DNA of 64,000 bases from Gekko japonicus (lineage: Eukaryota). Where the stretch lies: assembly GCF_001447785.1 (NCBI RefSeq), contig NW_015164664.1, positions 774,274-838,273 of the forward strand, written 5' to 3'. The translations under genes were made by a program, and so were the position numbers. Position 1 is the stretch's first letter; each line of letters starts with the position of its first letter. The notes beneath the pieces are model-generated. The model was given only the letters and a program-made list of their open reading frames with translations. It did no database searches and had not been told where the DNA came from. Below, piece by piece: positions 78 through 56,770 of the stretch.

Positions 78-185
78 CTGAGCCCCCTCCCTGCTGAGAT
101 GCACCATGACAGCCGAAGACTCGTGGACTTCGCTACCATCATACACCCCGCAGCCTGAGAGGACAACAGCAACTTTCTTGCCCAT
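78..185 (-). CDS. First coding exon of a GATD3/ES1-like (glutamine amidotransferase-like class 1 domain-containing, ElbB/DJ-1-PfpI superfamily) gene; the gene continues off the left edge
   Basis: Minus strand ACCATGG (ATG at 185) reads [36 protein letters not shown], then a GTAAGA donor at 77. It matches the ES1/GATD3/ElbB signature [28 protein letters not shown]. Absent from the ORF track because the frame runs off the window edge. Confidence 0.92.
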
Positions 186-249
186 GGTGAGCAGTGGGGA
201 GGAGAGTCCTGCTGAGCTGATCACTGGCAGGCTTCTGCTCCCTTGAGGC

Positions 250-404
250 TTTTGTAGACACAGCCTCCGCCCACAACAGTGAGGCTGGGCATGGTCTTTA
301 CTGGCAAGAGGCTTTCCACTCCCTGCAGGCAGGCTGGGGCTGTGTTCGTTGTCCGACTGGTTTCTCCTATTGGTTCCTCTTTCAAGCCTCGGAGCCTGGC
401 CAAT
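250..404 (-). promoter_or_regulatory. Putative proximal promoter of the GATD3-like gene
   Basis: On the minus strand: TATA-like TACAAAA (256-250), GC box GGGCGG (272-267) and CCAAT (373-369). A further CCAAT lies on the plus strand at 400-404. All are 65-220 nt upstream of the ATG. Confidence 0.45.
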
Positions 405-3960: not shown

Positions 3961-6900
3961 GCTTGTCCGATTAACGGCTTCAGTATGTGTCCCCTTCCTC
4001 CCTTCCAGGATCTCTCTTGCTGGCGGTCCATTTCTACAGCTCCGCCGGGCCTACTCCGCTGATCCCCAGCTCTGCTCTTGGGGTCCTTCTGCTCCTTTTA
4101 TCACTTCTTCTGGCATATGCAGGTGAGAAAATGGTAGATGTTCTCTGGAAGCTTTGGAAGGCAGACTGTGTTTTGCTCTGTATATGTTGATTGATGTTAG
4201 TGTACTTTTGCCAGTTTAACTGACCTAATGTGTAGGGAGAGGCCAGGGCTTTAGTGGAGGAGCATCTGCTTGGCATGCAGAAGGTCCCAGGTTCAGTCCC
4301 CGGCTTCTGCAGTTGAAAGGATCAGGCAGTAGGTACTGTGAAAGACCTCATCCTGAGACCCTGGAGGGCCTCTTCCGTCCAGTGTTCATGTGGACCACAG
4401 ATTTCAGCTCCCATCACAGTATCTGGAAACTTGCATACAATGCCAATGAACACGTGTGCCAGGTTACTAGTTCTCATGGCTGCAGGCACACGTTTTGTTT
4501 ACTTTGTTTATATTCCCCCTTCTCTCTAGTGGGGATGCAAAGCAGCTTACATAGGTCTCTCTCTTCTCCATTTTATTCTCACAGCAGGTCCGTGAGGTAC
4601 ATTAGATTGTGCTGTTTGCTCGAGGTCATACAGCAGGCTTCCATAACAGACTGGGGATTCAACCCCGGGTCTCCTGGTCCAGCCTTCTAACTGCTACACC
4701 ACAGTGGCTTCATCCCTGGTTCCCAAGTATGGCTTCCATGGATGGAGTTGTGTCTCTTTAATTGCTCGGGGCTGTCATTAGTTAGGTTGAGAGGCCGTTT
4801 ATAAAACCTGTGGCTAAAGATTCTGTTTATGCATTGTACTGACTTACATTTTGCAGCCCTACAAGTTTGGTAACAAAACTGTTGCTTGTCTTTTTTCAAT
4901 CCTCCGTCAACAGGGGTACGGAAGAGCCGCCAGAATGCCTCCTTGTTTGTGTCACTCTGCCTGACGGTTTCAGTGCTGTGGTGTGGCTATGGAGTGATCC
5001 AGATCCTGGCTGGGCAAGGGGTCCTCCCCGGCACTGCTGACCTGCGCAACGCAGCCGTGCCTGGACTGGTAGCCTTCAGTCTGGGGCTGCTCCTCATCAG
5101 CCTGGTGGGCTTCCTCCACAAAGAGGTCCACCTTGCCATGATGGCGTCTGCCATTTCTCTGGCCTGTGCCCATGAAATCGCAGCCGTTTATGATGCTGCC
5201 TTCGGATCGTCTGCTGTGGCCTGCAATTACATGGTTGTCTGCTTTGTTGGGGGCTACGTCGGGTTGGGGAAGTGCCTCTTTTTTCTAAGCCAAGAGAAAA
5301 TTGCCCTGCCTGGCACAGACCTGCCCAAGAAAGAGGCCAGCAACAGGCAGGGTCCAGACAGTGGCACAGGCTCAAATGACTTGACTGCATTCGGCTTGAT
5401 CCTGAACATGCTCTCGGCCAGTGTCTTGGGCTGCCGGCTCCTGGGGGTGACTGATGATCTCTTTGTGGGGCAGGTCCCCTGGCTCTGGGCAGGAGGGGTC
5501 TACCAGCTTGGCGCCTCCATCTTCTCCTATCGTTCCCTGGATGCGCTGACTGCCACTTTTTTGGGCTTCACCTCCCTCCTGAAGTTTGGGGAAGGCTATT
5601 CCCTCTTGATCCTGCGCTGGGTGCCTGAGGAGCCCAGCTTCCCCATTCCATTCTCAGTGGCTTTTGCTGTCCTCTTGACCATTTTGGCCGTTTTCATTGC
5701 TATTGACAGCCTGGCTGATGGCCTCTATCTGCTGTTCTATGTGGCCTTGTGCATCGCACTTGCCTGCAGTCCACGAGGCTTTCTGGAAGGGGGCCCTCAG
5801 GGTGTGGCAGTGGCCATTTTTGTGGCCTCCACGCTCCTGACTCTTCTTCACCTTTACAATGGGAAAGCAGAAGTTAAAATCCCGAGGGGGGAGGGAGTGC
5901 TCAAGGCTTTGCTCTCACGTCTCCAAGTTTGCAAGCTCCGGGAGGGGAATGACCTCCACACTCCCTATCTGGGTTACTCCAAATATGCCGATGCCGAAGT
6001 ACTGGGCTATGCATGCAGTGTGCTTGCTTCTTTTGCCATCACAGTGGCAGCAAAGCCAAACTCCCCTCTTGCTACAATAGTCCTACCTTGGGTGGTGGCT
6101 GCAGGGGGGCTCTTGAAGCTTCTGTGTGGTTCTCTGGCTTTCTCCCGTGGCAAGACTTTAGAAAGCAGCGCTTTCATTGTCTATGGGTTTATGTGGATTA
6201 TCTGGGGCATTGCCAGGTATGGGGGGCTGTATGGTGCTGCACGGGGGTTCCAGGTAGCTGTGGGCATTGTCTCGCTCATGCTTTTCAATGCCTTCCTCGT
6301 CCTTTGCACCCTTTTCCTGAGCATCTCCTGGTTCATCTACTCCCTCTCCTTTGAGCTCATACTCATCAGCTTCCTGTTGGATGCGGTTGGTGCCACCTCC
6401 ACTGGTTATGACATTGCTGTCACCATCATCTTTGGCTTGGTCAGCTTCTACTGCTTTCTGAGTGCCCTGGTCAACTGCACTTTTGAGAGTCCTCAGCTCC
6501 CCGTGGGACGTCCCATTGTGAGGCTCAGTGGCTTTGGGGGAGGAAGCACCAAATGTCTTCATTTGCCAGCCAGGAAAGCATCTTCAGTCAAGCAAGTTGC
6601 AGGTAAGGAAACAGTACAGCTGGTGAGGCTGTTTTCTGGGCCATAGGCAGAAACTTTGATCATCTACCTTTATTAAAGCTCCTTCAAAAAGCAGTTTGAA
6701 CACATGCCTTACACTAAGTGAGACTCTAAGTCTATCAGGGTCAGTATTGTCTACTCTGAGTGGCAGTGACATGCCAGGGTCTCAAGTTGAGGTCTTTCAC
6801 ATTATTTACTACCTGAACCTTTTAACTATGTAGTATGTCTTGAGTCCCAGAAAGGCAGATTATAAATAACATAAATAAATAGTTTAAAAAGTGGTGATAT

Positions 6901-9900
6901 TGGGGATCAAATCCAGGACCTTTTGCATGCAACACTGATGTTCTATCACTGACCCACACCTCCTCTTTCAGTTGATGCTGTACACTATTCACCAGATTGT
7001 ACAGGGAGCTCCTATCTTGTCAGCAGACTTGGCTTTTTGTTCTGATTTTGGACACTTAAATCCAGGGGTCCTTTCGTAGAAAAAGAGCTAGGGGAACTCA
7101 TTAGCATAACTCATTAGCATATGCCACACCCCCTCACATCACCGGAAGTGTGTCATAAGGCCACACCTCCTGACATCACCGGAAATGTGTCATAAGGCCA
7201 CACACCCCGCCCCCAATGGTCCCGGCTGCCGGTGCCGGCCTTGCAGCTCCACTGCCGAGCCCCATGAGGGGCCCGGCGGTGGACCTGCAAAACTGTGTTC
7301 CCCCGCATCCCCCCCCCAAATGACCTCTGGAAACTGCCTTTGGAAACCTTAAGAGTCAGTTTAAAAGTCCAAGACAAGTACTGGTGTTTTAAGAGAAGGG
7401 GTTTGACTACTGGAAAGAGTGTACCAGCCTTCAGGAAAAGGAAATGACCTCTGCTTAAATCTATTTTGCCACCTCAGACAAAACAGCCCTAAGGCAGTGT
7501 ATAAATTTAGCATATAAATGCACACAGCTGAGCTTAGTTGTCTCTTGCAAGTCCTTGCACCAACAAGCTAAGCAGGGCTTGCCTAGTTTATAATCTACCA
7601 ATGGACAGAAAGAGTCAAGGTACAGTGTCCTGCACTCCCTCATCTGTGGGTCTGTGGCCTGGCATTGTTAACCACTAAGCCCATCCTTTGGTTTCAGAGA
7701 TAATGAAGAAAGGGGGCGTGTGTGGGATCCCCACAGACACGGTATATGTTCTTGCAGCAGCCTGCTGTCAACCTGATGCTGTGGAGAAGGCTTACAAGTA
7801 AGGGGCAAGTTCTCCATCCAGGGTTCCTCTGGCGATCTAATGCTGGGGGTGGGGGAGCTGCTATGTTTCTTGGGTCTAACACAGTCATGGACAGAAACCA
7901 GTGCAACTCACCTTCCCTTAGCAACAACCAGGACACCTTTTGTAGCAGGAACTCCTTTGCATATTAGGCGACACACCCCTAATGTAGCCAATCCTCCAAG
8001 AAGAAGAGCTCTGTAAGCTCTTGGAGGATTGGCTACATTAGGGGTGTGTCGCCTAATATGCAAAGGAGTTCCTGCTACAAAAAGAGCCCTAGAACCACAC
8101 TCCTGCACAGTGTCTCTCTTAAACTCTTACTGATACTCTCCTCCATGTAGATCTCCATGTGATACTCTCCTCCATGCAGATCTCATCCCTTTGCACATGC
8201 TTGGTTCACAACTCGCATCTACATAGCTCTTCTCAATGACACTGGAGTAACCTGCCAACTTCACACATTGCTTCCCTTCCTCATTCACACGCCAATAGCC
8301 ATGACTTTGTTCTGAATCAGCAACCCAGGAAGAGGCATGGGAGATAATTCTTGGGTCCGGGAGTTGAGAGGATGGATTGTGTAGGCACGGTTACCATGAT
8401 CAAGGAATGTGTCTACTTTCAAGGCATGGCTAGGGTCTTCAATCTGAACTTGCATATTTGCTAGACTTATTGAACCTCTTTGTTCTCTCTCTCACCCTAG
8501 CACAAAGCACCAGGCTCAGGACCGTCCCATGTCGCTCTGGATTTCAAGTCTGAAACAGCTGGAACCGGCCAAGCATCTGTTCAGCCCTGTCCTCTGGGAT
8601 TTCATGGATGCTGCATGGCCATCACCTATCAGCTTGGTGATTCCAAGGGGTTAGAGAATCTCTTCTTTGCTGCTCAGACTTCTCCTCTTTAACCCTTCCC
8701 TGTTTTTTGGATTCCACTTCTCTGTGTGGTGCTCCTGTAAAGGGCCATTGGTCTCAAGAATCTCTTCTGAATGGGAGAGCTTTGATGCTGAGCAGCTCTT
8801 TTGTTTTTTCCAATGTAGGTGAATGGGTGGATTACCTGGGCATGAAAGACTCTGCTAAATATGTTGGTACCCCTCAGAGCGTAGCTATTCGCATTCCAGA
8901 TTGCTCGGTCACTACCCATCTGATTGACTTGGTGAGCTAATCTAGAACCTCTGCCTTTATGTGTCTCTGCCTTTAGGGTTGTGAAAGAGCATGGAGAACT
9001 TTGGTGAGCAGTCCAGGGATACACTCTACCACTCACCTCTTAAATGATAGGCTTAAAATAAAATATAGGTGAAATCTGTGGGGTTTGTATATCTGAGCCC
9101 TGCTTTGATAGCTTGTTCTGTACCAGGCTTTTCAGTTTTAGAGGGGTCTGAGACCTTGGTTGGTCAAGACAGAGGATGGAAGGAGAAGACAAGTACTACA
9201 TCAGTGTCCAAAGGACAGTAGGGGTTTATGTCAAATCAGGGAAACTGATGGGAGGTAGTTAAGGAAAGTCTGGTTGCCTAGGGTCAGAAACTGCTTGTTT
9301 GTTTTAAAAAATGTCCCCTCATAAGGGCAGGAAACCTTTTTTTTAAAAAAGCATGTCATCTTTATTTAATATGAATTCCTTGACAGGTGCAGTCCATAGG
9401 GAATTGCCTCATTCTAGGATTTGCTCTAATATGGGAGGAAAAGCCACCCCCTGTAAATCTAACCCTATGCATGCAGTTCTCCTTGATCTTATGAACAGCC
9501 TTATGCTCTCTTTCTCGGTCTTCAGGTTGGCCCAATTACTGTCACATCTGCCAATCCGACAGGAGAAGCAGACACCACTCACCACAACCAGGTGTATGCC
9601 AAGCTAGGAGACAAGGTAAACTCTATGCAAGTGGTATCAAACATGTGGCCCGGGGGCCAGACCAGGCCCTCGGAGGGCTGCAATCCGGCCCGTAAGGCCC
9701 TGGCTGTTTCCTGCTTCCTTTCCCAGTTCTGCTGCTGTTGTTACATTACAGCTTACTTTACCAGACTCTCTCAATCACACAGGAGAGGTAGATAGGCAAG
9801 CATCTCCTGTTCTATTGAGAGAGGCTGGTAAAGCACTGGCTGAGGCTCCTCCCCCTCCTCCTCCCAGGGGGAGGGAGGGAACCCAGAGCTCGCTTTCAGG

Positions 9901-12900
9901 CCAGTCTGCCTCAATCATATTCAGGACACAAAGGGAAGCCTTTCTTTTCTTCCACTGGCTGAGGCTCCTTCCTGAAGGGAGGCAGGCAGGATGTTGTTGC
10001 CCATCTTCAAGAGGTCGGCTGATGGAGAATTTAAACCGGTACACCGGCTCGAACGGCTGCTGGAGAGTTGCTCGGCAATTGCCTTCTTCGCGGGAGGAGA
10101 TCAAAGCCTGTTTCCGCTTCTTCCGAAGCGGAATCACGCCAACCTAACACTCCCTCTTAGGCGCTGCTGCCTGCTTGTCCCCCCCCCTCGCTGGGGAGCG
10201 ATGCGCTGGGCTAGAAACTGCCCAAACTGTCAAAAGCAGCCGTCGCCCACTTCGCACAAAAGTGAAAGTGCGTCAGTCCTCCATCTTGGCTCGACCGGAA
10301 GCCCTGGCATTACATTTTATGACACACATGGCCCGGCCCAACAACGTCTCATTTATGTCAGATCTGGCCCTCATAACAAATGAGTTCGACACCCCTGCTG
10401 TATGCAATTGCTTGTCCTCATGGCAGACCCAGCTCCCATGATTTTAAAGGGAGCTTCTTAAACCTTTAGGTTACCAGAGCTTGAGCTCAGTGCACCTCTA
10501 CTGAGTGGAACTTTGTGGGTTCAAACATCTAGAGCAAGAGTCCCCAGTGTGATGCCCATGGGTACCAACACCTCTCCTGGTGCCTGCCGAGTGTCTTTCG
10601 AAAGTGGAAGGGGCCAAATGGGGCTTTGCCCTGCAGGGTTTCTGGGTGGCCATCGGAAATCTGACTGGCTCTGCAGATTTTTCTAAAATGTTGCTTTGGC
10701 AGCAGCTGCCACCACATCACAAGGATCTTAAGCACTGTGTTCATTTTAAAAGATATCCTGTTAAACAGAACTTTTGCCCGAAGCGCTGAAGAGTTATACA
10801 TAACCTCGCTCTATGACTCTGCCTCCTGTGGCAGCCATTTAGTGGCTGCAACTACCACCCTGTGTCAGACTTCCAAAGGTGCCTGCAGGTTCAAATAAGT
10901 TGAGGACCCTTGTTCTAGAAAGACCCAAAACTTAAGTGCTTCTGATTTGCTCAGGATCGTGAGCTGCTATTACAGAGAGATGCATTCACTACAGCTGTGA
11001 AGGGGTGGGGGGAGGCAAACAACTGAGCCTCTTCAGTTACCTATCCTCTTTCCCCCCAGGAAAGAAGAGCAAGACCCAAGTTAAACTGGAGAAGAGAGAG
11101 GGCACCCCCCTGCCCTCCACTCTCCATTTGTCATATGAAAGAAAAAGGCAGGAAGGATGCTGTTTTCCATCTAGCTCAGAAGTGTGTCCATGACATTGGA
11201 AAGCACTAAGGCAGGATGTACGTCTTGTATAAATTACCAGACCAAATCTGGAGAGAGCTTCCTCTCTTCACTCAAAAAATGTCTGATCCTTTCTAGGTGG
11301 ATGCGGTTCTTTGTGATGGACCTTCTCCAGAGAACATAGCCTCCACAGTGGTGGACTGCACCAAGATTGGGAGTGGGCACATTGGGTTCTTTAGAGTTGG
11401 CCTTGTCCCTAAATCCCAGGTCAGCATTATCTCATTGTTCCTTCTCTTGTACAATAATTTTTGATGTGTTAAGTCAGTCACATTGTTTATTAGAAGCCAT
11501 GTATCATTGCAAGCACAGCACTATACGTACACAAAGTCTGCAACCCCCAATAGACCTGATTAAATATAGACAGACAGATAGATAGATAGCTATAGATATA
11601 GATATAGAACTTCTATACAACAGGTAGTACAATTGGGGGCCTTTGGGCATATATACAAAAATGTAAATATATTGGCACTCCAAAATATCTACCATCCAGG
11701 GCCACAAAGGATGTTATCTTTCTTTTAATAAATTGTTATCCCACCTTCTTCAAGGCAGCTTAGAGCAGGGGTGTCAAACCTACGGCCCGCAGGCCAGAAG
11801 CAGCCTGCCCAGGGTTTTAATTTGGCCTGCGAGTGGGGCTCTCTTCTCTCCCCCCTCCACTGCCCATACTCACCCTTCTGAGCTGGAGCTGCCTCTGAAT
11901 GCAGGGAGCAGAGGATGGGGCTGCCAAACTTACCAGTTCGCTCAGCCATTGAGTGCGTTCCTCTCTGCCTCCCAGCCACCACTCCCAGCCTCCATCAACC
12001 TCATCAAAGGTAGGGGACCTGGGGTGTCTTTCTGCTGTGATCCTTGGGCTTCTTCTTGTTTTTTTATTTTAAAAATTGCATTGCCAAATCCCACTATTCC
12101 CCACCTTTCCATTTTAGGCAGGCATCTTTTAAGGGTGGGAGGGAGCGTTTGGGACCAACCACAGTTAAAATATAGAATTCTACAAACTCAAGGAGCTCCA
12201 GTTTTGCAGAGAAATATTAGCTTTAACATCACGATCCCTCCTAATATGGGGCTCCAATGGCATATCTCTGCTGCCTGGCATTATATTTTATGACACACAT
12301 GGCCTGGCCTGACAAAACCCCATTTATGTCTGATTGACCCTCATAACAAACAAGTTCAACACCCCTGGCTTACAGGCTGTACACATTTTTTCCATTTTGT
12401 TCTCACAACGACCTGTGAGGTAGGTTAGGCTGAGAGAGAAAGCGATGGGCCCAAGGTCACCCAGGTGGCTTCAGTGGGAGTTTGAGCCCAGGGCTCAGGC
12501 TGACACATTAAGGACTACACCACACTGGCTCTCTGGAAGAACAATCTCATAAATGCTTTCCTTGAAGCCACGCACGTATAATCTCTTGATATTAACTTTG
12601 CTGAGAAGAGTCCCTCTTGCTAACACAACATCCCTGCAAGCCACAAGTATTCTGGAAGATCTCCATTTCTGACAGAGATTACCCAAAATCAAATGGGTGC
12701 ACTCAAAAATCTAGAGGGCTTGCCCTCTGCACTTGGCAGCTCACAGTGCAATAGTATTGCTTTGCCCAGCTCCTAGAAATCAATGCATTTTATAGAGCAT
12801 CAACTGTGCTGGTGACTTTTGCAGTTGGAGTCTGAATGTAACCCTGTGTAGTCTGTCTTCTAACTGCAAGAAAGTCAGCCTGTGTATGCAAAATACCTAG

Positions 12901-13454
12901 GGTTGCTAATCTCAAGGTGGTGGCTGGAGATTTCTCACTCTTACAACTGATCTCCAGGTAACAGAGATCAGTTCGCCTGTAGAAAACTGTGGCTTTGGAA
13001 GGTGGACTCAATGGCATTATACCCCATTGAAGTCCTTCCCCTCCCCAAATCCCACCCTCCTCAGGCTCCACCCCCAAATCTCCAGGTATTTCCCAATGCA
13101 GAGCTGGCAACCCTAATAATAGCAGCAGCTGTGCCTTGAGACCAGGAACTCTTGAATACTGCCACGACTTCATTCAGAGGAGACTAAACTAGGAGGAGAA
13201 GGCTACAGACCCATGGAACACTCATCCAGTCTTGCATTCTTTGTCTCCATTCTCAGGTGTTACAGATTCTGGAGCGGGTCCAAAGAAGATACCAACCAGG
13301 CCACACCAATAATGCCCTGGTCATGGAGGGCAAGGAAGAGCAGCAGACCCTGTGCAGAGCCTTCCTCAGCAATGATGCTCATGTTCAGGGAAACTCACCA
13401 ACATCATATACCAACAAAGCATTCTGTACTGATGAAGGAGGTGCCCCTCAGTGA
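3302..13454 (+). CDS. Gene A: 873-aa multi-pass membrane protein, 3x GPR1/FUN34/YaaH (SatP)-like repeats plus C-terminal Sua5/YrdC-like domain (9 coding exons)
   Basis: Manually spliced exons 3302-3347, 4009-4122, 4914-6602, 7698-7797, 8501-8649, 8819-8931, 9526-9615, 11297-11419, 13257-13454. All introns are GT-AG and phase-compatible; total 2622 nt with no internal stop seen. YrdC motifs: GVCGIPTDTVY, AIRIP, TSANPTG, ASTVVD. Confidence 0.88.
4009..4122 (+). CDS. Gene A exon 2
   Basis: ttcctcccttccag acceptor; SLLLAVHFYSSAGPTPLIPSSALGVLLLLLSLLLAYA; G|GTGAGA donor; phase 1-1. Confidence 0.8.
4914..6602 (+). CDS. Gene A exon 3 (bulk of the membrane domain)
   Basis: Lies within the 586-aa ORF 4886-6646; acceptor cag at 4911-4913, donor G|GTAAGG; highly hydrophobic, with SatP-like repeats. 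Confidence 0.93.
7063..7329 (+). mobile_element. Non-autonomous hAT-like MITE (CAGGGGTC...GACCTCTG family) in gene A intron 3
   Basis: Imperfect TIRs; near-identical inverted copy at 34031-34476; partial copies near 23627 and 38526. Confidence 0.7.
7698..7797 (+). CDS. Gene A exon 4 (start of YrdC domain)
   Basis: tttcag|AG: EIMKKGGVCGIPTDTVYVLAAACCQPDAVEKAY; AA|GTAAGG donor. Confidence 0.92.
7929..8090. repeat. Palindromic MITE (perfect ~64-bp arms) in gene A intron 4
   Basis: 7938-8001 is the reverse complement of 8019-8082, separated by a 17-nt loop. Confidence 0.85.
8501..8649 (+). CDS. Gene A exon 5
   Basis: ccctag|C: TKHQAQDRPMSLWISSLKQLEPAKHLFSPVLWDFMDAAWPSPISLVIPR-G; donor GTTAGA. 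Confidence 0.88.
8819..8931 (+). CDS. Gene A exon 6
   Basis: tgtag|GT: EWVDYLGMKDSAKYVGTPQSVAIRIPDCSVTTHLIDL; donor GTGAGC. Confidence 0.9.
9526..9615 (+). CDS. Gene A exon 7
   Basis: ttcag|: VGPITVTSANPTGEADTTHHNQVYAKLGDK; donor GTAAAC. Confidence 0.92.
9628..10397 (+). mobile_element. hAT-type non-autonomous element
   Basis: Degenerate left TIR, right TIR gttcgacacccctg; 3' part shared with 12270-12367. Confidence 0.65.
11297..11419 (+). CDS. Gene A exon 8
   Basis: ttctag|: VDAVLCDGPSPENIASTVVDCTKIGSGHIGFFRVGLVPKSQ; donor GTCAGC. Confidence 0.9.
11766..12367 (+). mobile_element. hAT-type non-autonomous element (CAGGGGTGTCAAAC TIR)
   Basis: TIR caggggtgtcaaac / gttcaacacccctg; 8-bp TSD gcttagag/gcttacag; related copy at 9628-10397. 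Confidence 0.75.
12899..13114. mobile_element. MITE with AGGGTTGC/GCAACCCT termini; family copies at ~27512-27720, 33309-33520, 57240-57449, 63696-63895
   Basis: Terminal inverted repeats and a shared core (acaactgatctccag...ctggagaaaatggctg...ggagggtggact). Confidence 0.7.
13257..13454 (+). CDS. Gene A exon 9 (terminal coding exon)
   Basis: ttctcag|: VLQILERVQRRYQPGHTNNAL...YTNKAFCTDEGGAPQ*; its start aligns with the gene B tail VMQIFEKVK. Confidence 0.85.
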   Translation: MLQILERVQRRYQPGHTNNALVMEGKEEQQTLCRAFLSNDAHVQGNSPTSYTNKAFCTDEGGAPQ

Positions 13455-15870: not shown

Positions 15871-16105
15871 NNNNNNNNNNNNNNNNNNNNNNNNNNNNNN
15901 NNNNNNNNNNNNNNNNNNNNNNNNNNNNNNNNNNNNNNNNNNNNNNNNNNNNNNNNNNNNNNNNNNNNNNNNNNNNNNNNNNNNNNNNNNNNNNNNNNNN
16001 NNNNNNNNNNNNNNNNNNNNNNNNNNNNNNNNNNNNNNNNNNNNNNNNNNNNNNNNNNNNNNNNNNNNNNNNNNNNNNNNNNNNNNNNNNNNNNNNNNNN
16101 NNNNN
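15871..16105. other. Assembly gap (N run)
   Basis: 235 N. Confidence 0.99.
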
Positions 16106-16270
16106 GTATAGTGGTTAAGTGAGCAGACTCTAATATGGGAGAACCGGGTCTGATTCCCCACTCCTCCACTTGCAGCTGCTGGATGACCTTGGGCAAGCCA
16201 TAGTTCTGGCACAGCTGTCCTTGAAAGGGCAGTTCTTGAAAGAGCTCTCTCAGCCTCACCCACCTCACAG

Positions 16271-16477
16271 GCAATGTTCCCCCTAAGCTGTGGAGTCTTG
16301 CAAGCAAAAATTCTACTCTGTGAGCTACTGGCATTAAAGTTGTGAGCGAGTGATTTGGCTGCTGCATAAATTAGTTTGCTCTGGAGCCATCCTTCCTGAG
16401 CTAAGACAAAAATGTGTGAGCTGGAGGCTAAAAAACTGTGAGCTAGCTCACACTAACTCATCTTAGAGGGAACACTG
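16271..16477. mobile_element. MITE with GTTCCCYCTAAG TIR nested in a SINE-like repeat; inverted copy at 40383-40590
   Basis: gcaatgttccccctaag ... cttagagggaacactgc; the sequence matches 40383-40590 in reverse. Confidence 0.7.
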
Positions 16478-16572
16478 CTCACAGGGTGTCTGTGGTGGGG
16501 AGGGGAAGGGAAAGGAGTTGTAAGCTGCTCTGAGACGCCTTTGGGTAGTGAAGGGCGGGGTATAAAGCCAAT

Positions 16573-16742
16573 NNNNNNNNNNNNNNNNNNNNNNNNNNNN
16601 NNNNNNNNNNNNNNNNNNNNNNNNNNNNNNNNNNNNNNNNNNNNNNNNNNNNNNNNNNNNNNNNNNNNNNNNNNNNNNNNNNNNNNNNNNNNNNNNNNNN
16701 NNNNNNNNNNNNNNNNNNNNNNNNNNNNNNNNNNNNNNNNNN
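16573..16742. other. Assembly gap (N run)
   Basis: 170 N. Confidence 0.99.
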
Positions 16743-18989
16743 TCCAAAGCGGCCATTCTCTCCAGGTGAACTGATCTCTGTTGAATTGACTTTGAATTCA
16801 GTCCATTTAAGAACTGACTCAACTTTCAATAAAATTTGCTGCAGATTATCCAGCAGCATATATTAAACTTTAATAGAGGCATAAATTCCCAAACATTTAA
16901 AACTGGCTGTTTGCCATTTAGATCCTGTGAGCAAAGTAATCTCTTTTTGTTTCCTCTTTGTTGAAACTCATCAGGACTGATTTTTAAAAAAAGATTAAAT
17001 AAGTTTTAATCTCTTGTTATTCTCCAGTGCATCATTCATAGATGCTATTTTTAAAAAAGTAGAAGTTAAATTGGGTTTTTCTGCCACTCCCCACCCCCTT
17101 TTTGGGCATAATGCATTGTCAAAAAGCACATGGATTACTTCAATTTAAAGTTCTCAGTCTACACTTTTAGTAGCCATCAGCACAGATAAACATAAAATAC
17201 ACAAAGATTAGGTCAAAAGAGAAAGAAGCATAGCTGAATTAAAACAGAAGTAAACGTAGATCTGGAGCTCTACTAGGATGACATGAACATAGGAACTGCC
17301 TTGCTGAATTTTCAACCATGGCCGGGCCAGGCCAGTGCCTCGAAAAGTCCACAAGCATATCATGAAGGCAGTAAACTTCTCATTTGTCCCCAACATTTGG
17401 TAGTCAAAGGTGGTTTCTGATCGTATACCCTGAACCTGCTGGTTGGTAAATTACTTTATCATACATATCATTTGAATGCAGTGAAATTACTGGGAGGGGA
17501 TACAGGAAAGACTAGGAAACAAATGTTAGTCATACATCCAGGGCTCTTTTTGTAGCAGGAACTCCTTAGCATATTAGGCGACACACCCCTAATATACAAA
17601 GGAGTTCCTGCGACAACAAAAGCCCTGAATTCTGTGCTTTTCTTCAGAAGATAATGACAGTTCTGTTATCTGTATACACTGCAAAGACATCAGAGTTAAG
17701 GTCATGTTATTACCACCTTAGTTTGCACTAGCTATTCTTGTTTGTTCCTTCTTTGTTTTATAGAGAACTGTGATCTCAGATTTTAATTCTTCTGTAAACT
17801 TCTCAAACAACTGTCAGAAATCAATACTGGTACATTTTGAAATACATAAATTAATCCTGAGAGAATCACCATTTTTAGGGATATAATTTTTCCCCAAAGG
17901 GGAAAATGTAAATAAGTCAAGAGCTATAGTTTCTTTTTAAAGTATCATCTACTACAGAAACACTGTTAAGTTCATGAAGAACTTGGTTATTTTTAGGTAC
18001 TACTATTCTGAAATATCTATTATTTCCCTCATATTTCACTTGCTGAAATAAGCAGTCAAGAGGTAAATCATGGGAATTTATACTATATAGAAACATTTCA
18101 GATTTTACTCTGTTCAGTTTGTGACCTGCAATATTCCATATGAACATCCATAAGCACTTTGCTAGAGCTGACTATAGCAGCTAAAAAGATCACCACATCA
18201 CCTGCATAAAGGCTTGAGTTTAACTGAACAGATTCCCAGTACCTTTCATTTCCTCCGACAGTCTCTTCCTAAAAGCTAGAGGTTCTAAAAAAATTACAAG
18301 TAGAAGAACAGAAAGGGGCATCCTTGCTGAGTACCCCTTTACAGCTCAAAGGTTTTTTTAAAAAGTGTGTCCATTAACACATAAGTGAACTGGTGCAGAC
18401 TGTTTCAATTCAGCCTGAAAGGAATCAACAAATCCGAATGCCTTCAAGCAAGAGAATTTTTTTCTCTCCAGTCTATCAAAAGCTTTCTCAGTATCAAGAA
18501 AAAAGCATAGCAGCCAGTGTTCCTTCTTTTTTAACATTCTTGAACAGCTATAAATGAATGCTTACAGTTCCTTGTCTATGTGGTATAACCCTGTGTTGAT
18601 CAAGATTCACATATTTACACAAATAGTAGGATTTAATCTGTTTGCTAAGACTGATGTTTAGATTTTATAAACCTGGTTCAGCAGATTTTTGGGATGATAG
18701 GAATTTACACTTGGAGGGGGTCTTTTCTAGCATTTAGGTAAACAAAAAGCATATGAAGATAATTGAATGCAGACAGCAGAGTTTTACTAACAGAGTGATC
18801 CCAGCTTTGATAGAATTCGTTGGTGACCCATTAGGACCTGGTGCTTTGTTACTTTTTAGTTCTTTTACAGTGGAAGAAAATTGGCAATTCCATGAATTTT
18901 ATATCTTCCTCTGATGGCTTTGGAATTGCTGAATATTTGGTCTATGATCATTCTAAGAAAAATATTATTCAAGATCAGCAGAATGTATA

Positions 18990-20490
<1,501 letters not shown>

Positions 20491-23709: not shown

Positions 23710-23861
23710 NNNNNNNNNNNNNNNNNNNNNNNNNNNNNNNNNNNNNNNNNNNNNNNNNNNNNNNNNNNNNNNNNNNNNNNNNNNNNNNNNNNNNNNNNNN
23801 NNNNNNNNNNNNNNNNNNNNNNNNNNNNNNNNNNNNNNNNNNNNNNNNNNNNNNNNNNNNN
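23710..23861. other. Assembly gap (N run)
   Basis: 152 N within a GC-rich MITE. Confidence 0.99.
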
Positions 23862-49784: not shown

Positions 49785-49870
49785 TCATACTATTTGGTTC
49801 TTCACCTTCTCAAATATCTGCATCACCTTGGCTGCTGGGACACATCCTTCTCTCAGTATCGTGATACTAC
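49785..49870 (-). CDS. Gene B exon 10 (terminal coding exon)
   Basis: ctcctag|GT: SITILREGCVPAAKVMQIFEKVKNQIV*. Confidence 0.9.
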
Positions 49871-52800
49871 CTAGGAGAGAAGAAAAGGCAGATGAATGCT
49901 CGATCCCGGAGGAAAAGCAAAGGAATGTGGGAAAAAGTCATCCTGGCTGCCTCACCTTACTGTACAAAAGGGCATTATTATATGAGCTTAAATGAGCAGT
50001 CCTTCCTTTAGCAGCCACCCATCATTCAAACTTGCCAGTTTTCCAAGCTGAGTTTGCATCTTAAACATGTAGCCTAACTTCTGCCCAACACAGTGTTCAA
50101 GATAGAGGTACCCCTACTAGGTCAGTCTCTAATGAAAAATTCAGGTAAATATAGGCAAGACTTGGGAGCTGGGGTTTAAAAGACTGAGAGCAGGCAAACT
50201 GCAGAGCAGATATAGAAATGCTGTTTGACTAAAACAGTACCCTGAACACTAGGACATAAATCTGGTGCTCACCTTCGTCTATCTTGGTGCAGTTAACCAC
50301 TGTGGATGCCACCACTTCATTGGACTGCCCGTCACAGAGAACTCCATCCAGCCAGTGTCCAAGGCGCCTGAGGGCGAAAAGGAGAGTAAATGCCACTGGG
50401 TCACTTAAAAACATATGCCCCATTTCACTGGTGTGGCTTGGCATGCCTCCAAGCTCCCTTTGCTTGGGCATAAAGGCTATTTTATAACATTGACTGAGCA
50501 GGAGCACTCACAAGATGACCATGTCATGGTGGGTGCTGTCAGTTTCTCCGCTGGGATTAGCCGAGGTGATTGCCAGGGGACCTGTCATGTCTATGAGATG
50601 GACAGTGACTGTTTGGTCAGGGACTCTGATCATGATGCTGTCTTTTGTTCCCACTCGGTCATATCCATCTCCAACCCCTGGAAGAAAAGAAATGGGACAG
50701 CAGTGGTTCCAAAGCATCTGGTTACCCACACTGCTGTCATTGTTTCATATTTTGGAGATATTATCTATTTGTACCCATAACTCTCAGCACACAGTACATT
50801 AGAATGATGCTCAAGATATTTCCATAGGATTTATCCATTCAGACCTTGTCCAGGACTAGGCATGCTTAGCATCAGAAATGGAATGGAACATGATAGGATC
50901 CAAACACCTTCCTGAGATTAAAATTCCATGGATTGTTGTTAAATGTATTGAAAGGAAAAATGACAATCTTGCCCAAAAGATGGGGGACAGAGTAACTTCA
51001 TGAGGCTGACCCATGACTTTGGCAGAACTTTGTATTTTTTGATCATTCAGATATTTGGAGGGGTTAGGAAAAGGGCAGCAAAAACATCTGCAAGATGGTT
51101 TTGACTCCTGGCCTTCTTTCAAAATAGTGAAATGAGAAAAGATTTTGCTGAAAGCAACACAATGTTATTATGTCTTTGTTGTTTTGAACAACTCCCAACA
51201 CACTATATTCAAGGGAAAAAGGTTTCCCTGTGGACTGTGTCTCTAAGTGGCAGCAGGAGCTGACGTCTCACCTCCTCATCATACTGCTGAATGAGGGAGA
51301 AAATGATGTGGAATTTCCAAAAGAAATAGTGAAGACCAACTAGGATGACAGACACTTTCTGAAAAGCTGAACCAGATTTTAAGAGATGTTCATTCACACT
51401 TTGAAGTTAATGAACAGAACCTGCTCTGGATGTGCTTTAACCATCCATGGGTTTCCCAAGTTGTCTTGACAATTTAGCCTTCATTTCTGGCATTTTCCCC
51501 ACCCTTCCTCCTGAGCTCCTTGTGGCCTTGACAGTCTCCCCATTTTATGATAACTCTGCAAGGTAGGTTAAGCTGAGTGATGATGACTGGTCCCAGGTCA
51601 GCCAGTGAGCATGTCTTGAGGCACCTCTGGCATCGCAAAACAAGAGATGGAATAAGTGACGGGATGCCCAGCCAACCCACCTAACGTCTTCAGCCACTCT
51701 CCTTTCTTGACAATGCATCCAATACCTCCAGGGTAAACATTCTCCATAAATTCCCAGAGCAAAGGGCTGAAGGGTGGAGTGGCAGCCCGGAGCTGGTCTA
51801 CGTTGGAGATGAAGATACAGATGGGTTTCTCTTGAGGCCTGTCCTGTGAGGACGAGAGGCAACAGGTAATCCTGGGAATGGATAGGCAAGGTGAAATAAG
51901 CACCACTGAAAGGGCTCTACTCTGCTGCTCTGGTCCAGCCCAAACATCCTGGCTACTCCTGTGTCATCTGAGGTCTTGTTTTGGAGATGACTGAGCTGCC
52001 AGCACTGAATACTCAACCCACCAGGAATGTATTTATTTCATGTACCCTCTCCCACTCATGGTGCTCTGGACTTGGCACTCGGGGGATAAACTAAAGAGAG
52101 GATCTTTGTTAACTACCTGTGTTTAGGATTCCTGACTAGGAAACCTCTACCTTATTTTCCCCGTAGCCAGGAATGTCTTTAATAGAGGATAGTCAAGGGT
52201 AAATAAACATGGGGCTGAACTGCAGTGGCCGGATCTGGGTGGTTTTCAGTTTCTCCAAAGTCTGGAGAAGATCTCAACTGGATCAGCTATTTATAAGGGG
52301 AGGGGCTCAGATGTCTACAAAGTACTTTTGGATCCTATTCTGTTTTCCAGATTATTTCCATTTATCACAAATGTCTCCTTAATTGCTGAGGTTCTGCTCT
52401 GAAAGGTGTTTGGTATATGCAGAAGACGCCATAGAACTGGAAGCTGATGGACTTCTGTTGCACTTGGCAGAGCTTCAGGGATAACGGAAGGGAGACCAGC
52501 CCTCTGGTTTCCCAGTATATATTTGGAAACTCCATAGCAACTAATACAAAAACACAGAACTGCTGTTAAAATCCTGATCTTTCCATACCTGCACTTTAAA
52601 AATAAGTTTCTAGTCCACAGGGATGTTTGATAATGTTATGGGAACAAATACGGGTACAGTTGTGGAAATGGGGATCCAAATTCATTCAGGTTTCCTACTT
52701 CATATAATGTTAACATATGCATATATAATAAATAAAATAAATGTGTAGCTGGACACACAGTGTCCTGTGGCTTGCTGTTGTTGTGTTCATCGTGCATACC

Positions 52801-55800
52801 TTGATTTTGTAGATCTTCTCAATGGCTTCTGGGTGTTTGCATGAGGCAGCTAGAGCATAAACCGTGTCAGTGGGAACTCCACACACCCCTCCTGCATTCA
52901 ACTTTTCAGCAATGGTCCTCAGGCCACTGGTCCGATGGGAACTGGGGCTGATGCAAGGAGGAGAGGAAGGTGCTTCCTTTACAGCTGTCTCTGCCTGAAA
53001 ATGATTGAGCAAACAGGATTTATAGAACTAAAGGAGCACCCCAAGGAGCCATGACTCATGCCTACTAGGCAGGAAAACAGTAGCAGGCAGGGCCTGGACA
53101 GGGTCAATTTGGTCACTCTTGCAAGTTTCAAAATAGAAATCATCCCAGCTGATCTAACTGAAATGCAGAGTTCTAGGGGGACATCTCTTACCCTGAGGAG
53201 GGAGGGTCCCATCAGGATGAGCTCTCTGCCAAATATGCCATTTGCAAGAGATGCTGTCGCTCCATAGATGCAGAGAATGCTGAAGATGATCAACATAACA
53301 ACTGTAGAAAAAAGGACACATGTCAGTGTCTTGTCTCATGGGCCTCTTGGCATTTCTTGTTGCTAGCAAGCATCAGGACTTACTCTCAAGAGGCACCGGA
53401 AGGCTTTCCAGTGTGAAGAGAAGGAAGCAAACAATCAGCACCTCCATCACAGCTGTCAAACATAGGAGCACCAGGTTCGAGTAGGAGGCTGTGGGCAAAA
53501 GAGGAAGAGATATACTTAGTGTTACTGTGGGAGGGCCATAGGCAGGTATGAACTGATGAGTGAATGAGGTTCTCCCTCATTCCCTAGAATGCTCAGTGTG
53601 TTGGCAGGCTTTGATTTTCACAAGAACTGAACATGTGAGTAGGGGAGCTAACAAGGGGAGCTGTGCAAGACAACTCTATGTGTCTTGGCTGCTGGCTAGA
53701 GAACTGGCCTTGAAGCTTTCCCTTTGAGCATGTGCAAGAGCCACAGCAACTGGCTTTCACCCAATGAGCCACAACTCTGCTGGCAGGAGATCAACAATCC
53801 CATATTGTACTTTGGCTTACCTAAAATCATCAGAAACACATTGACAACCAAAAAGGCTACAGCTCCTGCTGTGAATCCCCCATCATTCCTTGGGTCAATG
53901 TTCAGTAAATTGCCTACAAAAAACCCAGCAAAAGAGCTTGTTGGAGCAAAGCAGACCAAGGACAAGGTCAAAGGAAGTGGACAATGTATTGTGTTGTGCT
54001 GCCTTTTAGCAGGGAACTCAGAACAGCTTGTGCAGAGTGGATTTCCTTTGGAGGAGGAAGGACTGGGTACAAGTGGTGGCTTTAAAATATTTGGTTTCCA
54101 AATTGGTTGGATGGGGTATTATGAAAGTACAGAAGCAAGCAGACTGGAAGGCTGTGCTAGTCCCAAAGCATAATCAGATCTGCAAGACCACTTCTCAAAT
54201 GAGAAGCATCCTAGCAGTTCTGCAAGCCACATCCAGACTCTGAAGAAGACTTTCAGGTCTCATAATGGCTGCACACACTCCCCCCCCCCTGCCATCAGAG
54301 CAGGTTCCAGTTTGCTTTTCAGCCCTCCTCCCATGCAGACATGTGTGACTCATATTCCACAAGTTAAAGGTTTCCATACCTCAGTGGTAAAGCCACAAGC
54401 AACCTGTAGCAATAGGACAGAATGCCTGCACTAAATCATCACCCAGGAACATGCCCTATTAGTATCTAATACAAGGACTCTATAACATGATTTTGCCTAT
54501 AGGGCCTCCTGCACTGGACTTTCTTTGGTCATCTGTTGCACCCATCCAGAGGGACAGTTGGGGAACCAACACAGCTTGCGTGTTTGGCACTGTCCCAGGT
54601 AGGTGGTTGACAAGGGATCATCCCACACAGCATATTTTCATTGTGGCCAGCACAGTCAAGAAGAATACAAAGTCAATAGGAAAGAGGGTTATTACCTGCA
54701 AACAGGAGCCAGGTCCAGGTTGCCCAAACAGCTGCATAGCAGAATGGCAAGACTGACCCAAATCTTCTCCCCCTCTGCACTTGCATTCTGCACACGTAAA
54801 GCTGGAATATGGCTCCTGGGATCAACACTGTGGGAATGCTGAGGTGCTGCCTGATGGGGTCTTTCAGAGACCCTTGGAGGGCAGAGAAGGCAGCCAGGCC
54901 ATTGCAGATGAAAAACAAGGCATTAGGAGCATCCGAGGGGGTCAGGTTGGGGGATTTGTTCGACTTTGATAGGCAGCTTTTGATGCTCATCAATGCTTTC
55001 TGGAGCTTTGAACTGGACATAACTTGAACCCCTATGGGAATCAAAGCCTTCTCAGCAACTGAGTTTACCAGGCTGGCAAAAGTGGTGTAGAGAGAGGTGG
55101 CTGTGTAGATACTGCAGGCAACCCCCCAAAATATATAGGCCCCTCTGATTGGAATCTGCTGAATGGTGGAAACTGTCAGAAGGACAAAGAGAGAATTGTG
55201 CACCACCTCGAGAACATCCCTGTTGAAGGACATCAAGAGGATGACACAGGCAGTGGCCAAGAAGAACCAGCCACCGACCATCCCTGCCCGGCTCAGCTGC
55301 ACATTCTTAGATTGGATGAAAACCGTCAGTGTGAACTCTTCCCAGGACATTACCAGCCAGAAAAGGCTGTGGACACCTGACTTGGTGGTATAATAGACAT
55401 CACCTCGCAAGTAGCCATAATAACTGGACAAAACATGGCCGATAGAGTTGATGCTCACCCACACAGTTCCTACATAGAAGTTACACATGTAACCAAAACA
55501 GTAGAAAGAAAAGATAAAGGAACTAATGAAGTCACACAGATTGCCCAGGGCCATGGGCTCAGCATACTTGGTGTTCTTCTTCTCTTCCCTGACATTCTTG
55601 GAAGAACTGCGGCTGGCTGACCCAAGCAAAAGGACATTGAAGAGAGGGTTCCCAAAGCCTGGCAGAATATATCGTTGAGTGATGCCCTTGAAAAGGAGTG
55701 CTATTGCACCATACAACCCACAGATGACAATGGCCAATTCCAAGACTCCTGAGACCACCAGAGCCCACTGGGCAAAGAGTCCGACTGCTTCAAACACCAA

Positions 55801-56770
55801 AGTCAAAGTGATGGCTCCAAAGACGAAGGGCATTATGTAGTTCACAGTTGCAGAACAGAAGGACAGGATGAAAGAAATGAAAATATAGGCCACCAAGCCT
55901 GCTACAGCACCATCCCTGGTGGAGAAACAGGCAGGGTCGAGTGAGGGGAGGGCAGAGACATTGCTGGGACTGAGGGATACATTCCCTGGCAAGAAATATG
56001 CCTCGGAAACAATGCGCGTGGCCCCGTAACTGCCCCATAGGCCAGCAAAAGCCAGGAAAGCTGTGCCACCCAAGTGGTCATACTTCCGGAAGGTCAACAA
56101 GCCAGCTAAGAGTTGAGACAGGCCTCCAATCAGGATGAGGTGAACTCCTAGGGGACCAAACAGAGTTAACCAGCAATGAGAATGGTTGTTAAAAGAGCTG
56201 AGCAACTCAAGGTTAAGACACTTTTGTTTCTGTGCAAATTCTGTGTTATAACTGGGGCATGCAAGGCGCTTCCTCTGGACTTTTAATCAAGCATTTAACA
56301 TAGATGTTGTGAGAGCTGAAAATGTATATTCTAGAAAATAAAGAGAAGATCCTTGTCTCAAAAAGACTTGAACTTTCTAAACAATTTCCCCAGTGTCCAA
56401 AGCTAGTGAGATCATCCCTCTATTTCCTGGTCCGCCCTTATTTATGTCAATGACAAGGGAGCCATTTTGCACAAGAGAGGTTGGGGTAGCGCCAGGTGAA
56501 GGACCCCTGCATCTGAATACAGCACCCACAGCAGAATGATGCTAGTGTTCATTGCTCTGCAGATGCACGGCTTAATTGGTAGAGGTGAAGGGTGAGGCTG
56601 GCTCTCTACTCACCGGCTAAGATGTTTTCCACCCCCTCAGGTTGGATGTTGCTTTGAGCAGAGGAGAAATTCTGCAGGCACACAAGGAATGCACTGATGA
56701 CATTCGCCAGAAGGCCCAGGACAGAGGGCTCGCTATAGAAGACAGCTGCAAAGCCTTCGGTGCTTGCCAT
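49785..56770 (-). CDS. Gene B: 873-aa multi-pass membrane protein, 3x GPR1/FUN34/YaaH (SatP)-like repeats plus C-terminal Sua5/YrdC (threonylcarbamoyl-AMP synthase-like) domain (10 coding exons)
   Basis: Exons 56770-56614, 56147-54696, 53913-53821, 53488-53384, 53301-53192, 52994-52800, 51843-51681, 50677-50512, 50367-50273, 49870-49785. All GT-AG and phase-compatible; total 2622 nt. GGLSQLLAGLLTFRKYDHLGGTAFLAFAGLW resembles SatP [31 protein letters not shown]. YrdC motifs: PTDTVYAL, KxRPxxKP, IRVP, TSANPSG, STVV, LREG. Confidence 0.9.
50273..50367 (-). CDS. Gene B exon 9
   Basis: RLGHWLDGVLCDGQSNEVVASTVVNCTKIDE-G; GTGAGC donor. Confidence 0.92.
50512..50677 (-). CDS. Gene B exon 8
   Basis: VGDGYDRVGTKDSIMIRVPDQTVTVHLIDMTGPLAITSANPSGETDSTHHDMVI; GTGAGT donor. 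Confidence 0.92.
51681..51843 (-). CDS. Gene B exon 7
   Basis: DRPQEKPICIFISNVDQLRAATPPFSPLLWEFMENVYPGGIGCIVKKGEWLKTL-G; GTGGGT donor. Confidence 0.92.
52800..52994 (-). CDS. Gene B exon 6 (start of YrdC domain)
   Basis: AETAVKEAPSSPPCISPSSHRTSGLRTIAEKLNAGGVCGVPTDTVYALAASCKHPEAIEKIYKIK; GTATGC donor. Confidence 0.92.
53192..53301 (-). CDS. Gene B exon 5
   Basis: ttctacag|TT: VMLIIFSILCIYGATASLANGIFGRELILMGPSLLR; GTAAGA donor. Confidence 0.9.
53384..53488 (-). CDS. Gene B exon 4
   Basis: cccacag|CC: SYSNLVLLCLTAVMEVLIVCFLLFTLESLPVPLE; GTAAGT donor. Confidence 0.88.
53821..53913 (-). CDS. Gene B exon 3
   Basis: ttttgtag|GC: NLLNIDPRNDGGFTAGAVAFLVVNVFLMIL; GTAAGC donor. Confidence 0.88.
54696..56147 (-). 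CDS. Gene B exon 2 (membrane repeats)
   Basis: Lies within the 510-aa ORF 54673-56205; ccctag acceptor, G|GTAATA donor; phase 1-1. Confidence 0.93.
56614..56770 (-). CDS. Gene B exon 1
   Basis: ACCATGG; MASTEGFAAVFYSEPSVLGLLANVISAFLVCLQNF...ENILA-G|GTGAGT. Confidence 0.88.

Follow-up and report, generated by a model that had tools for sequence, protein, structure and literature searches.

A 64-kb window of Gekko japonicus DNA (the whole stretch analyzed, from contig NW_015164664.1) contains three linked genes: two paralogs, here called gene A and gene B, that each fuse a polytopic membrane region resembling SatP and other AceTr (Gpr1/Fun34/YaaH) channels to a YrdC domain of the TsaC/Sua5 kind, and a short ES1/GATD3/ElbB-like gene. 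At a probability of roughly 0.45, we favor the reading that A and B form channels for small carboxylates, carry their YrdC domains in the cytosol and, as linked genes, act in an immune-metabolic context. An earlier note on this DNA, made from the sequence letters, had proposed the three neighboring genes, the kinship of A and B and the fusion itself; exon mapping confirmed the placement of A, B and the first GATD3-like exon, and profile, structure-database and fold evidence now supports the architecture.

Gene A (LOC107108494; plus strand, 3302-13454) is intact, with 9 coding exons that total 2622 nucleotides (nt) and encode 873 amino acids (aa). All borders are GT-AG, and the exons match the database protein P0001 (Gekko japonicus, 873 aa, predicted) at 100%; P0001, being identical to the gene A exons, represented full-length A. 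Gene B (minus strand, 56770-49785) is also intact, with 10 coding exons, 2622 nt, 873 aa, GT-AG borders and a reading frame kept throughout. Its model was guided by the Sphaerodactylus ortholog P0121, to which the gecko exons are 86-96% identical (one lower tblastn segment overruns an exon end); P0121 stood in for full-length B, and the gecko B exons were used singly. Open reading frames (ORFs) of 586 codons (A, 4886-6646) and 510 codons (B, 54673-56205, minus strand) surround the large membrane exons. The two paralogs share ~23% identity in the membrane part and are arranged tail-to-tail, their stop codons 36 kb apart, while the GATD3-like ATG lies head-to-head with that of gene A at a distance of 3.1 kb. 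Three assembly gaps (15871-16105, 16573-16742 and 23710-23861) all fall in the repeat-rich A-B spacer and touch no exon.

We examined the membrane part with profiles, repeat comparisons and predicted structures. The Pfam profile PF01184 (Gpr1_Fun34_YaaH) scored 18.5 bits on the gecko membrane exons of A and 24.8 bits on those of B, against a cut-off of 25, the matching regions being the third repeat of A and the first repeat of B; NCBIfam AceTr_1 gave 23.2 bits for A, again on its third repeat, and 19.8 bits for B, against a cut-off of 50. Precomputed PF01184 matches exist for many B orthologs and few A orthologs. When the Protein Data Bank (PDB) was searched with family profiles, SatP was the sole membrane-protein match, and the A-family profile aligned with full-length SatP (5ZUG) at an E value of 0.095; single-sequence PDB searches with A and B did not find SatP, which emerged only from the family profiles and the fold search. 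For that search we used the AlphaFold model of P0121, whose predicted local distance difference test (pLDDT) values are 80-95 over most of the membrane part. Foldseek placed SatP at ranks 1-6, with target-normalized TM-scores of 0.73-0.78. VIA realignment of model residues 8-213, which cover repeat 1 of the Sphaerodactylus B ortholog and not the gecko protein itself, superposed 175 of 182 residues on SatP with Z 20.8 and 2.7 Å root-mean-square deviation, the next match having Z 9.6; over 5YS3 and 5ZUG together the values were Z 20.4-20.8, 2.6-2.8 Å and 172-175 of ~182 residues.

Both A and B are predicted to have 18 helices. By hhalign, B repeat 2 matched B repeat 3 at 96%, and A repeat 3 matched B repeat 3 at 99.5%. 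B repeat 1 carries the motifs EPxVLGL and GGxxQxxAG...W, in which E14, P15, G19, G60, G61, Q64, G68 and W90 are invariant; these were compared with the published SatP motifs (NPAPLGL in helix 1; GGxxQxxAG...F/YGxFW in helices 2-3) rather than through a residue-level structural alignment, and the other repeats are more divergent. We read the membrane part of both proteins as three tandem SatP/AceTr-like six-helix units, on the strength of the predicted fold for B repeat 1 and of weaker profile evidence for the others.

The profile matches expected in the earlier note came out unevenly: Gpr1_Fun34_YaaH fell just below its cut-off, whereas Sua5_yciO_yrdC (PF01300) exceeded it, with 37.6 and 28.7 bits on gecko B exons against a cut-off of 25.1. 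Both A and B matched TsaC/Sua5 structures, at E values of 1e-16 to 1e-18 with single sequences and 1e-20 to 1e-22 with family profiles, and their YrdC module is of the single-domain TsaC type, without a SUA5 domain. The KxR/SxN tetrad serves as the literature filter for the TsaC/Sua5 family (PMC10321239). In Pa-Sua5, the tetrad residues K56, R58 and S143 are essential for ATP binding, with K56 and R58 contacting pyrophosphate (PPi), while T35, H67, R121, S181 and R195 hold threonine and R195 also bicarbonate (PMC6004061). The corresponding B tetrad, K704/R706/S797/N799, is present in the gecko exons and invariant in 54 of 54 B-family sequences. At the A positions K652/Q654/S745/N747, the lysine, serine and asparagine are invariant in 40 A-family sequences, and the arginine is replaced throughout (glutamine in 35, histidine in 3, lysine in 2, arginine in 0 of 40), so that A lacks a complete tetrad. 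Pa-Sua5 T35, R121, S181 and R195 correspond to T683, R776, S835 and R852 in B and to T631, R724, S783 and R800 in A, all of them invariant family columns onto which the pocket residues were mapped by hand from HMMER alignments. The position of the Pa-Sua5 histidine (H67) is hydrophobic in both families, as it also is in E. coli TsaC.

Because B keeps all the TsaC/Sua5 residues for ATP/PPi, L-threonine and bicarbonate, its YrdC domain is probably an active adenylate-forming enzyme that makes threonylcarbamoyl-AMP (TC-AMP) or a close analogue. Its full tetrad in every B-family sequence, and in amphioxus, bivalve and protist relatives, is the pattern expected of retained catalysis. The YrdC domain of A is probably a binding or regulatory subunit, and the loss of the arginine in A only suggests a division of labor between the two proteins. 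An intron lies close to the KxR lysine in both genes, two codons before it in A (7797/8501) and directly after it in B (52800/51843); the positions are close and not identical, which bears on the idea that the paralogs have no introns in common.

To follow the family beyond the gecko, we ran a profile search of 1.8 billion representatives and named the matches by cluster look-up. The notion of a vertebrate-specific family was rejected. Among molluscs, three bivalves, a land snail and an argonaut carry the fusion at full length, as does amphioxus, and it is also present in at least one metagenome protein from a microbial eukaryote. Microbial-eukaryote transcript and metagenome data yielded long YrdC-bearing proteins, among them P0401, in which a weak AceTr match completes the pair of Pfam domains, and the MMETSP transcript P0271, with the YrdC domain only. 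Five such proteins (P0271, P0278, P0280, P0401 and P0397; 900-1140 aa) have YrdC domains specifically close to those of the animal fusions (240-260 bits). The channel/YrdC fusion may have arisen outside animals. P0316 and P0343 (544-546 aa, from Logan) and the 664-aa Pleurodeles protein P0330 match the membrane part of the profile only, at profile positions 220-670, and have no YrdC match; these may be fragments or YrdC-less relatives. In several cases, 867-880-aa proteins with both Pfam domains are encoded on Logan contigs of 2.9-3.5 kb, too short to accommodate introns, which indicates that the fusion is transcribed as a single unit in relatives.

In a maximum-likelihood tree, vertebrate A was joined by three mollusc sequences (100/100) and vertebrate B by amphioxus and two bivalves (100/98), a protist group staying outside; the program warned of long branches. 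Given that mollusc sequences group with A, and amphioxus and bivalves with B, the A/B split probably predates bilaterians. The mollusc A-like sequences have leucine at the arginine position and also carry a DRPMSxWIS signature, and we infer from these sequence comparisons that A has been without the PPi-binding arginine since before the bilaterian radiation. Within vertebrates the membrane part is conserved at 60-90% identity from sharks to birds. Platypus has both an A-type and a B-type gene (P0102 and P0128) on one 51.5-Mb scaffold, and no therian member was found among the matches listed.

The adjacency of A and B recurs in other vertebrates, as the consecutive locus tags of Astyanax (AMEX_G12828/12829) and Phrynocephalus (JRQ81_007266/007267) attest, and in many further species the two lie on one scaffold. 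The linked GATD3-like gene is represented in the window by its 36 N-terminal residues, the catalytic region, where a nucleophile-elbow cysteine would be expected, lying outside. Homologs were sought with the stop-free frame around this exon as query, and the exon part alone was scored. It aligned with ElbB, SCRP-27A and ES1 structures at an E value of 1e-9, starting at structure residues 5-7, and is 100% identical to the N-terminus of a short GATD3 paralog in Heteronotia. Its closest matches form a distinct class of 224-226-aa GATD3-like proteins from squamates, turtles, birds, amphibians and sharks or rays, which starts directly at the first strand, whereas canonical mitochondrial GATD3A has a presequence of 30-45 residues. 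The protein is likely cytosolic, judging by its N-terminus. An identification of the window gene as ordinary mitochondrial GATD3A was thus rejected in favor of a separate short paralog without presequence. The exon's frame stays open for 107 codons upstream of the ATG (186-506, minus strand) and contains another in-frame ATG; because this segment bears no similarity to GATD3 presequences it is probably 5′ untranslated region (UTR), an N-terminal extension being possible. In all 8 species that could be compared, the short paralog is on a scaffold of the same length as that of A or B, including a 9.7-Mb turtle scaffold, which extends the linkage claimed in the earlier note beyond the gecko; the canonical GATD3A of Rhinatrema is on a scaffold other than that of A and B.

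Published data place the family in an infection setting. In zebrafish, B is si:ch211-153b23.3 and A is si:ch211-153b23.4, which bears out the earlier note's mention of similar neighboring genes in that species. In larvae infected with Shigella sonnei, highly significant log fold changes were recorded throughout: 6.0 for.3, 5.8 for irg1l, 4.0 for.4 and 3.1 for.5 (PMC6980646), and.3,.4 and.5 share a hub module with irg1l and noxo1a in weighted gene co-expression network analysis. The si:ch211-153b23 genes also appear with irg1l in one top-five list after exposure to perfluorooctane sulfonate (PFOS). Across 18 conditions of published RNA-seq, the fold changes of.3,.4 and.5 correlated pairwise with r 0.65-0.87. 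The co-expression that the earlier note proposed to check thus holds for the zebrafish genes; gecko RNA over gene B was almost absent in the runs sampled. IRG1L is reported to make itaconate in the mitochondrial matrix and to have been lost in therians and kept in platypus, and its neighbors, like those of paleo-IRG1 in oyster and amphioxus, are reported to encode VOC, YrdC, 2-oxoglutarate (2OG)-Fe(II) oxygenase and GAT domains (preprint 10.1101/2022.06.17.496652). The phyletic pattern of A and B is the one reported for IRG1L (platypus included; no therian among the matches listed). In the published data, co-expression favors an infection/itaconate context over glyoxal metabolism.

The mapped features are collected in Table 1. 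Between A and B, and from 56.8 to 64 kb, no further genes were evident. Spacer ORFs (19.3-20.3, 21.6-22, 25.1-25.8 and 41.3-45.5 kb) searched against Pfam gave only a weak reverse-transcriptase match, and an Rfam search returned no match. The overlapping ORFs of 100-200 aa at 41337-45472 (minus strand), one with a weak RVT_1 match, have the look of a decayed retroelement. Segments flanking two of the assembly gaps, 15795-16367 (minus strand) and 24045-24611 (plus strand), give near-identical repeat-derived translations (QQPNxSLTTLMPxAHR...), which indicates that these gaps fall within copies of a single repeat family. Comparable strings, resembling short interspersed elements, occur at ~12.9, 27.5, 33.3, 57.3 and 63.7 kb.

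Table 1. Coordinates of the features mapped in the 64-kb gecko window (TM, transmembrane)
Feature	Coordinates	Strand	Basis
GATD3-like coding exon 1, 36 codons	78..185	-	ATG at 185 in strong CACCATGG context, GT donor after 78; remainder left of window
Gene A exon 1, start codon	3302..3347	+	Exact match to P0001 aa 1-16; GT donor
Gene A exon 2, TM helix 1-2 region	4009..4122	+	Exact match to P0001 aa 16-54; AG/GT
Gene A exon 3, nearly all of the 18-helix membrane region and linker	4914..6602	+	Exact match to P0001 aa 54-616; inside ORF 4886-6646
Gene A exon 4, YrdC start, PTDTVY motif	7698..7797	+	Exact match to P0001 aa 617-649; aligned to Sua5 structures
Gene A exon 5, K652-H-Q654 at TsaC/Sua5 K-x-R position	8501..8649	+	P0001 mapping; Sua5 alignment
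Gene A exon 6	8819..8931	+	Exact match to P0001 aa 700-737
Gene A exon 7, S745-A-N747 motif	9526..9615	+	Exact match to P0001 aa 738-767
Gene A exon 8	11297..11419	+	Exact match to P0001 aa 768-808
Gene A exon 9 and stop	13257..13454	+	Exact match to P0001 aa 809-873, then TGA
Part of A-B spacer with three assembly gaps	15871..23861	.	No A or B exon maps here; tested ORFs without Pfam match
Gene B exon 1, start codon, EPxVLGL (apparent counterpart of AceTr NPAPLGL)	56614..56770	-	87% identity to P0121 aa 1-53; GT donor
Gene B exon 2, AceTr-like repeats 1, 2 and start of 3	54696..56147	-	89% identity to P0121 aa 53-538; inside ORF 54673-56205
Gene B exon 3, TM helix of repeat 3	53821..53913	-	P0121 guide
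Gene B exon 4, TM helix of repeat 3	53384..53488	-	P0121 guide
Gene B exon 5, last TM helix	53192..53301	-	P0121 guide
Gene B exon 6, linker and YrdC start, last residue K of K-D-R	52800..52994	-	PF01300, 37.6 bits
Gene B exon 7, opens with D-R-P (arginine of KxR)	51681..51843	-	PF01300 match
Gene B exon 8, S-A-N motif	50512..50677	-	PF01300, 28.7 bits
Gene B exon 9	50273..50367	-	Acceptor after polypyrimidine tract; frame kept
Gene B exon 10 and stop	49785..49870	-	93% identity to P0121 aa 846-873, then TGA

In the explanation that we favor, two protomers (AA, BB or AB) would assemble into a six-unit, SatP-like ring that conducts small carboxylate anions across a membrane, which should be a non-mitochondrial one since neither A nor B has a recognizable presequence. 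The YrdC domains would face the cytosol, because a six-helix AceTr unit has its two ends in the cytoplasm; that of B would work as an adenylate-forming enzyme and that of A in binding or regulation. The A, B and GATD3-like genes would be part of an old IRG1L-linked neighborhood switched on by infection, a setting that would make immune-metabolic carboxylates (itaconate, succinate, acetate) the most likely permeants. Substrate, assembly and enzyme activity are what we infer for A and B. Taken further, the window could mark one edge of an "itaconate cluster" of ancient animal origin, in which IRG1L (paleo-IRG1 in molluscs and amphioxus) would make itaconate, a heteromeric six-pore AceTr-type channel of A and B would move itaconate or related dicarboxylates, the TsaC-like domain (active in B, degenerate in A) would couple or gate the flux with ATP, and the cytosolic GATD3-like enzyme, the VOC protein and the 2OG oxygenase would modify or detoxify the acid, the whole set being infection-induced and lost together in therians. 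The idea of a gene cluster is strengthened by the present data, which also give it a concrete and testable direction, and stays a hypothesis; the extended scheme is, as a whole, doubtful.

Several points weigh against the favored explanation. The gecko membrane exons score just below the Pfam AceTr threshold; A repeats 1 and 2 show no significant hhalign similarity to other repeats; the AlphaFold model of gene A is poor (pLDDT 53) and was left out of the fold search; and the YrdC part of the B model is of low confidence. With threonine and bicarbonate pockets intact, the YrdC domains fit TC-AMP-like chemistry better than adenylation of the permeant, which leaves the fusion without an explained purpose. 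The GATD3 linkage consists in a shared scaffold rather than adjacency, GATD3-A adjacency having been observed in the gecko window only, and zebrafish.5 is no more than a presumed counterpart of the GATD3-like gene. IRG1L is absent from the 64-kb window, the IRG1L preprint notes no evident clustering by function (10.1101/2022.06.17.496652), and co-induction with irg1l may reflect merely a shared inflammatory program. In the gecko RNA runs sampled, the interval 50201-56200 yielded two read pairs in the membrane exon, intronic contig pieces and no junctions.

A rival to this explanation is a purely historical reading of the linkage, in which A and B are old tandem duplicates retained side by side through conserved microsynteny and the GATD3-like gene is a bystander, each ATO-YrdC protein is a lone, general acetate or monocarboxylate channel, and co-induction stems from a common chromatin domain or a broad inflammatory program. 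Tandem paralogs do often stay adjacent, many unrelated immune genes stand in the zebrafish lists as well, the IRG1L preprint's verdict on clustering fits, and in Acnodon a GATD3-type protein (presequence-bearing, and not the short paralog) and B occur on contigs that differ in length. We nevertheless consider this reading unlikely: the A/B split is apparently pre-bilaterian, yet fish, lizards and gecko still have the two genes side by side; the catalytic arginine disappeared from A only, in keeping with divided labor; the short GATD3 paralog accompanies A or B in 8 of 8 comparable species; and the phyletic pattern agrees with that reported for IRG1L.

Other alternatives concern what the YrdC domains do. 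They could be cytosolic sensors of ATP, threonine or bicarbonate/CO2 that gate the channel rather than enzymes, with A and B tuned differently. This would suit a protein such as A, which has no PPi-binding arginine yet strongly conserves its whole ligand pocket; no Kae1/TsaD-type partner domain is fused, and TC-AMP, described as highly unstable (PMC6004061), would be released at a membrane without evident use. The KRSN tetrad, complete in all 54 B sequences and in the amphioxus, bivalve and protist relatives, makes a sensor role for both proteins quite improbable. That B, and perhaps A, is instead a true TC-AMP synthase of the N6-threonylcarbamoyladenosine (t6A) pathway with a membrane part that merely anchors it would account for the full tetrad and the threonine and bicarbonate residues of B, and matches the automatic UniProt name, threonylcarbamoyl-AMP synthase. 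It is very unlikely: a three-fold SatP-like assembly of 18 helices, with an identity of 60-90% maintained from sharks to birds, goes far beyond an anchor, therian mammals appear to be without the family and have not lost t6A, and expression is strongly infection-inducible rather than housekeeping. Vertebrates also have a separate soluble YRDC. Hardly credible, finally, is a gene-model artefact in which annotation wrongly joined separate channel and YrdC genes. The membrane-YrdC junctions went unseen in gecko RNA reads, and some database entries are fragments of the membrane exon only; against this, intron-free, transcript-sized contigs encode the entire fusion, the 9 and 10 GT-AG exons stay in frame, neither a start nor a stop separating the parts, the membrane exon of gene A continues into the linker, and the same architecture recurs in amphioxus, molluscs and one metagenome protein with both domains.

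A and B belong to the two clades of "vertebrate ATOs" described in silico by Ghasemi et al. (iScience 2026, PMC13316224; bioRxiv 10.1101/2025.05.26.656167, May 2025) as proteins of ~900 aa with three tandem Gpr1/Fun34/YaaH domains and a C-terminal Sua5/YciO/YrdC domain. That study reports an AlphaFold2 model aligned to SatP at a TM-align score of 0.82 and proposes that a dimer reconstitutes the ring of six units; it gives no functional data and is silent on synteny, catalytic residues, expression and immunity (PMC13316224). The gecko proteins, with 873 aa and 18 helices, conform to this description, and A and B form well-supported separate clades. The same paper states that the family is absent from mammals and that separate protostome clades have no YrdC; here platypus has both genes, so that the absence holds for therians only, and amphioxus and several molluscs have the full fusion, with both clades represented. 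The earlier note's remark that no functional description of the fusion existed thus stands as regards function and is outdated as regards architecture, since the fusion, its triplicated AceTr unit and both clades are already published. Added here are the catalytic asymmetry, the probably pre-bilaterian split, the linkage and the infection/irg1l context.

Comparison with better-known systems sharpens these differences. SatP/YaaH and fungal Ato1/Ady2 (AceTr, TCDB 2.A.96; 5YS3, 5ZUG) have the same six-helix fold, and B repeat 1 keeps apparent counterparts of NPAPLGL and GGxxQxxAG; SatP, however, has one unit per chain and forms a homohexamer, whereas A and B have three predicted units per chain, ~20% identity, Pfam scores at or below threshold and a fused enzyme-like domain. 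TsaC/YrdC and Sua5 (COG0009, PF01300) share the fold of the C-terminal domain by sequence (E values to 1e-22), and B has their tetrad and pocket residues; unlike them, the YrdC domains of A and B are tethered to a predicted channel, lack the tetrad arginine in A, and are infection-inducible rather than housekeeping. The window exon has in common with ES1/GATD3A/ElbB, glyoxalase III/deglycase proteins of the DJ-1 superfamily (PMC8935817, PMC10209487), the N-terminal strand-helix motif. The linked gene differs from GATD3A in being a short paralog of 224-226 aa that starts at the first strand, and one of its exons lies in the window. Fungi provide a precedent for itaconate gene clusters, in the cadA-mttA-mfsA genes of Aspergillus terreus and in a cluster of Ustilago maydis that comprises transporters, a P450 and a dioxygenase of the ring-cleaving kind. 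There the itaconate-making decarboxylase adjoins organic-acid transporters and tailoring enzymes, much as the IRG1L neighborhood is reported with YrdC, GAT, VOC and 2OG-oxygenase genes; the protein families are different ones, and IRG1L lies outside the gecko window. No animal cluster is known to act in one pathway.

Collectively, these results bear on a channel family thought to be microbial: the A/B fusions are among the few animal members of AceTr, and their conservation reaches from sharks to birds and platypus. Should the link to IRG1L hold, A and B would be strong candidates for moving or processing itaconate in non-therian animals, a point of some reach given the wide interest in itaconate in immunometabolism and the fact that its transport is still being worked out. 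The contrast between a catalytically complete B and an arginine-less A offers a clear experimental handle, and zebrafish, which have all the genes and induce them strongly, allow a direct test of the hypothesis. More broadly, the locus bears on whether animals keep functional multi-gene metabolic neighborhoods over hundreds of millions of years.

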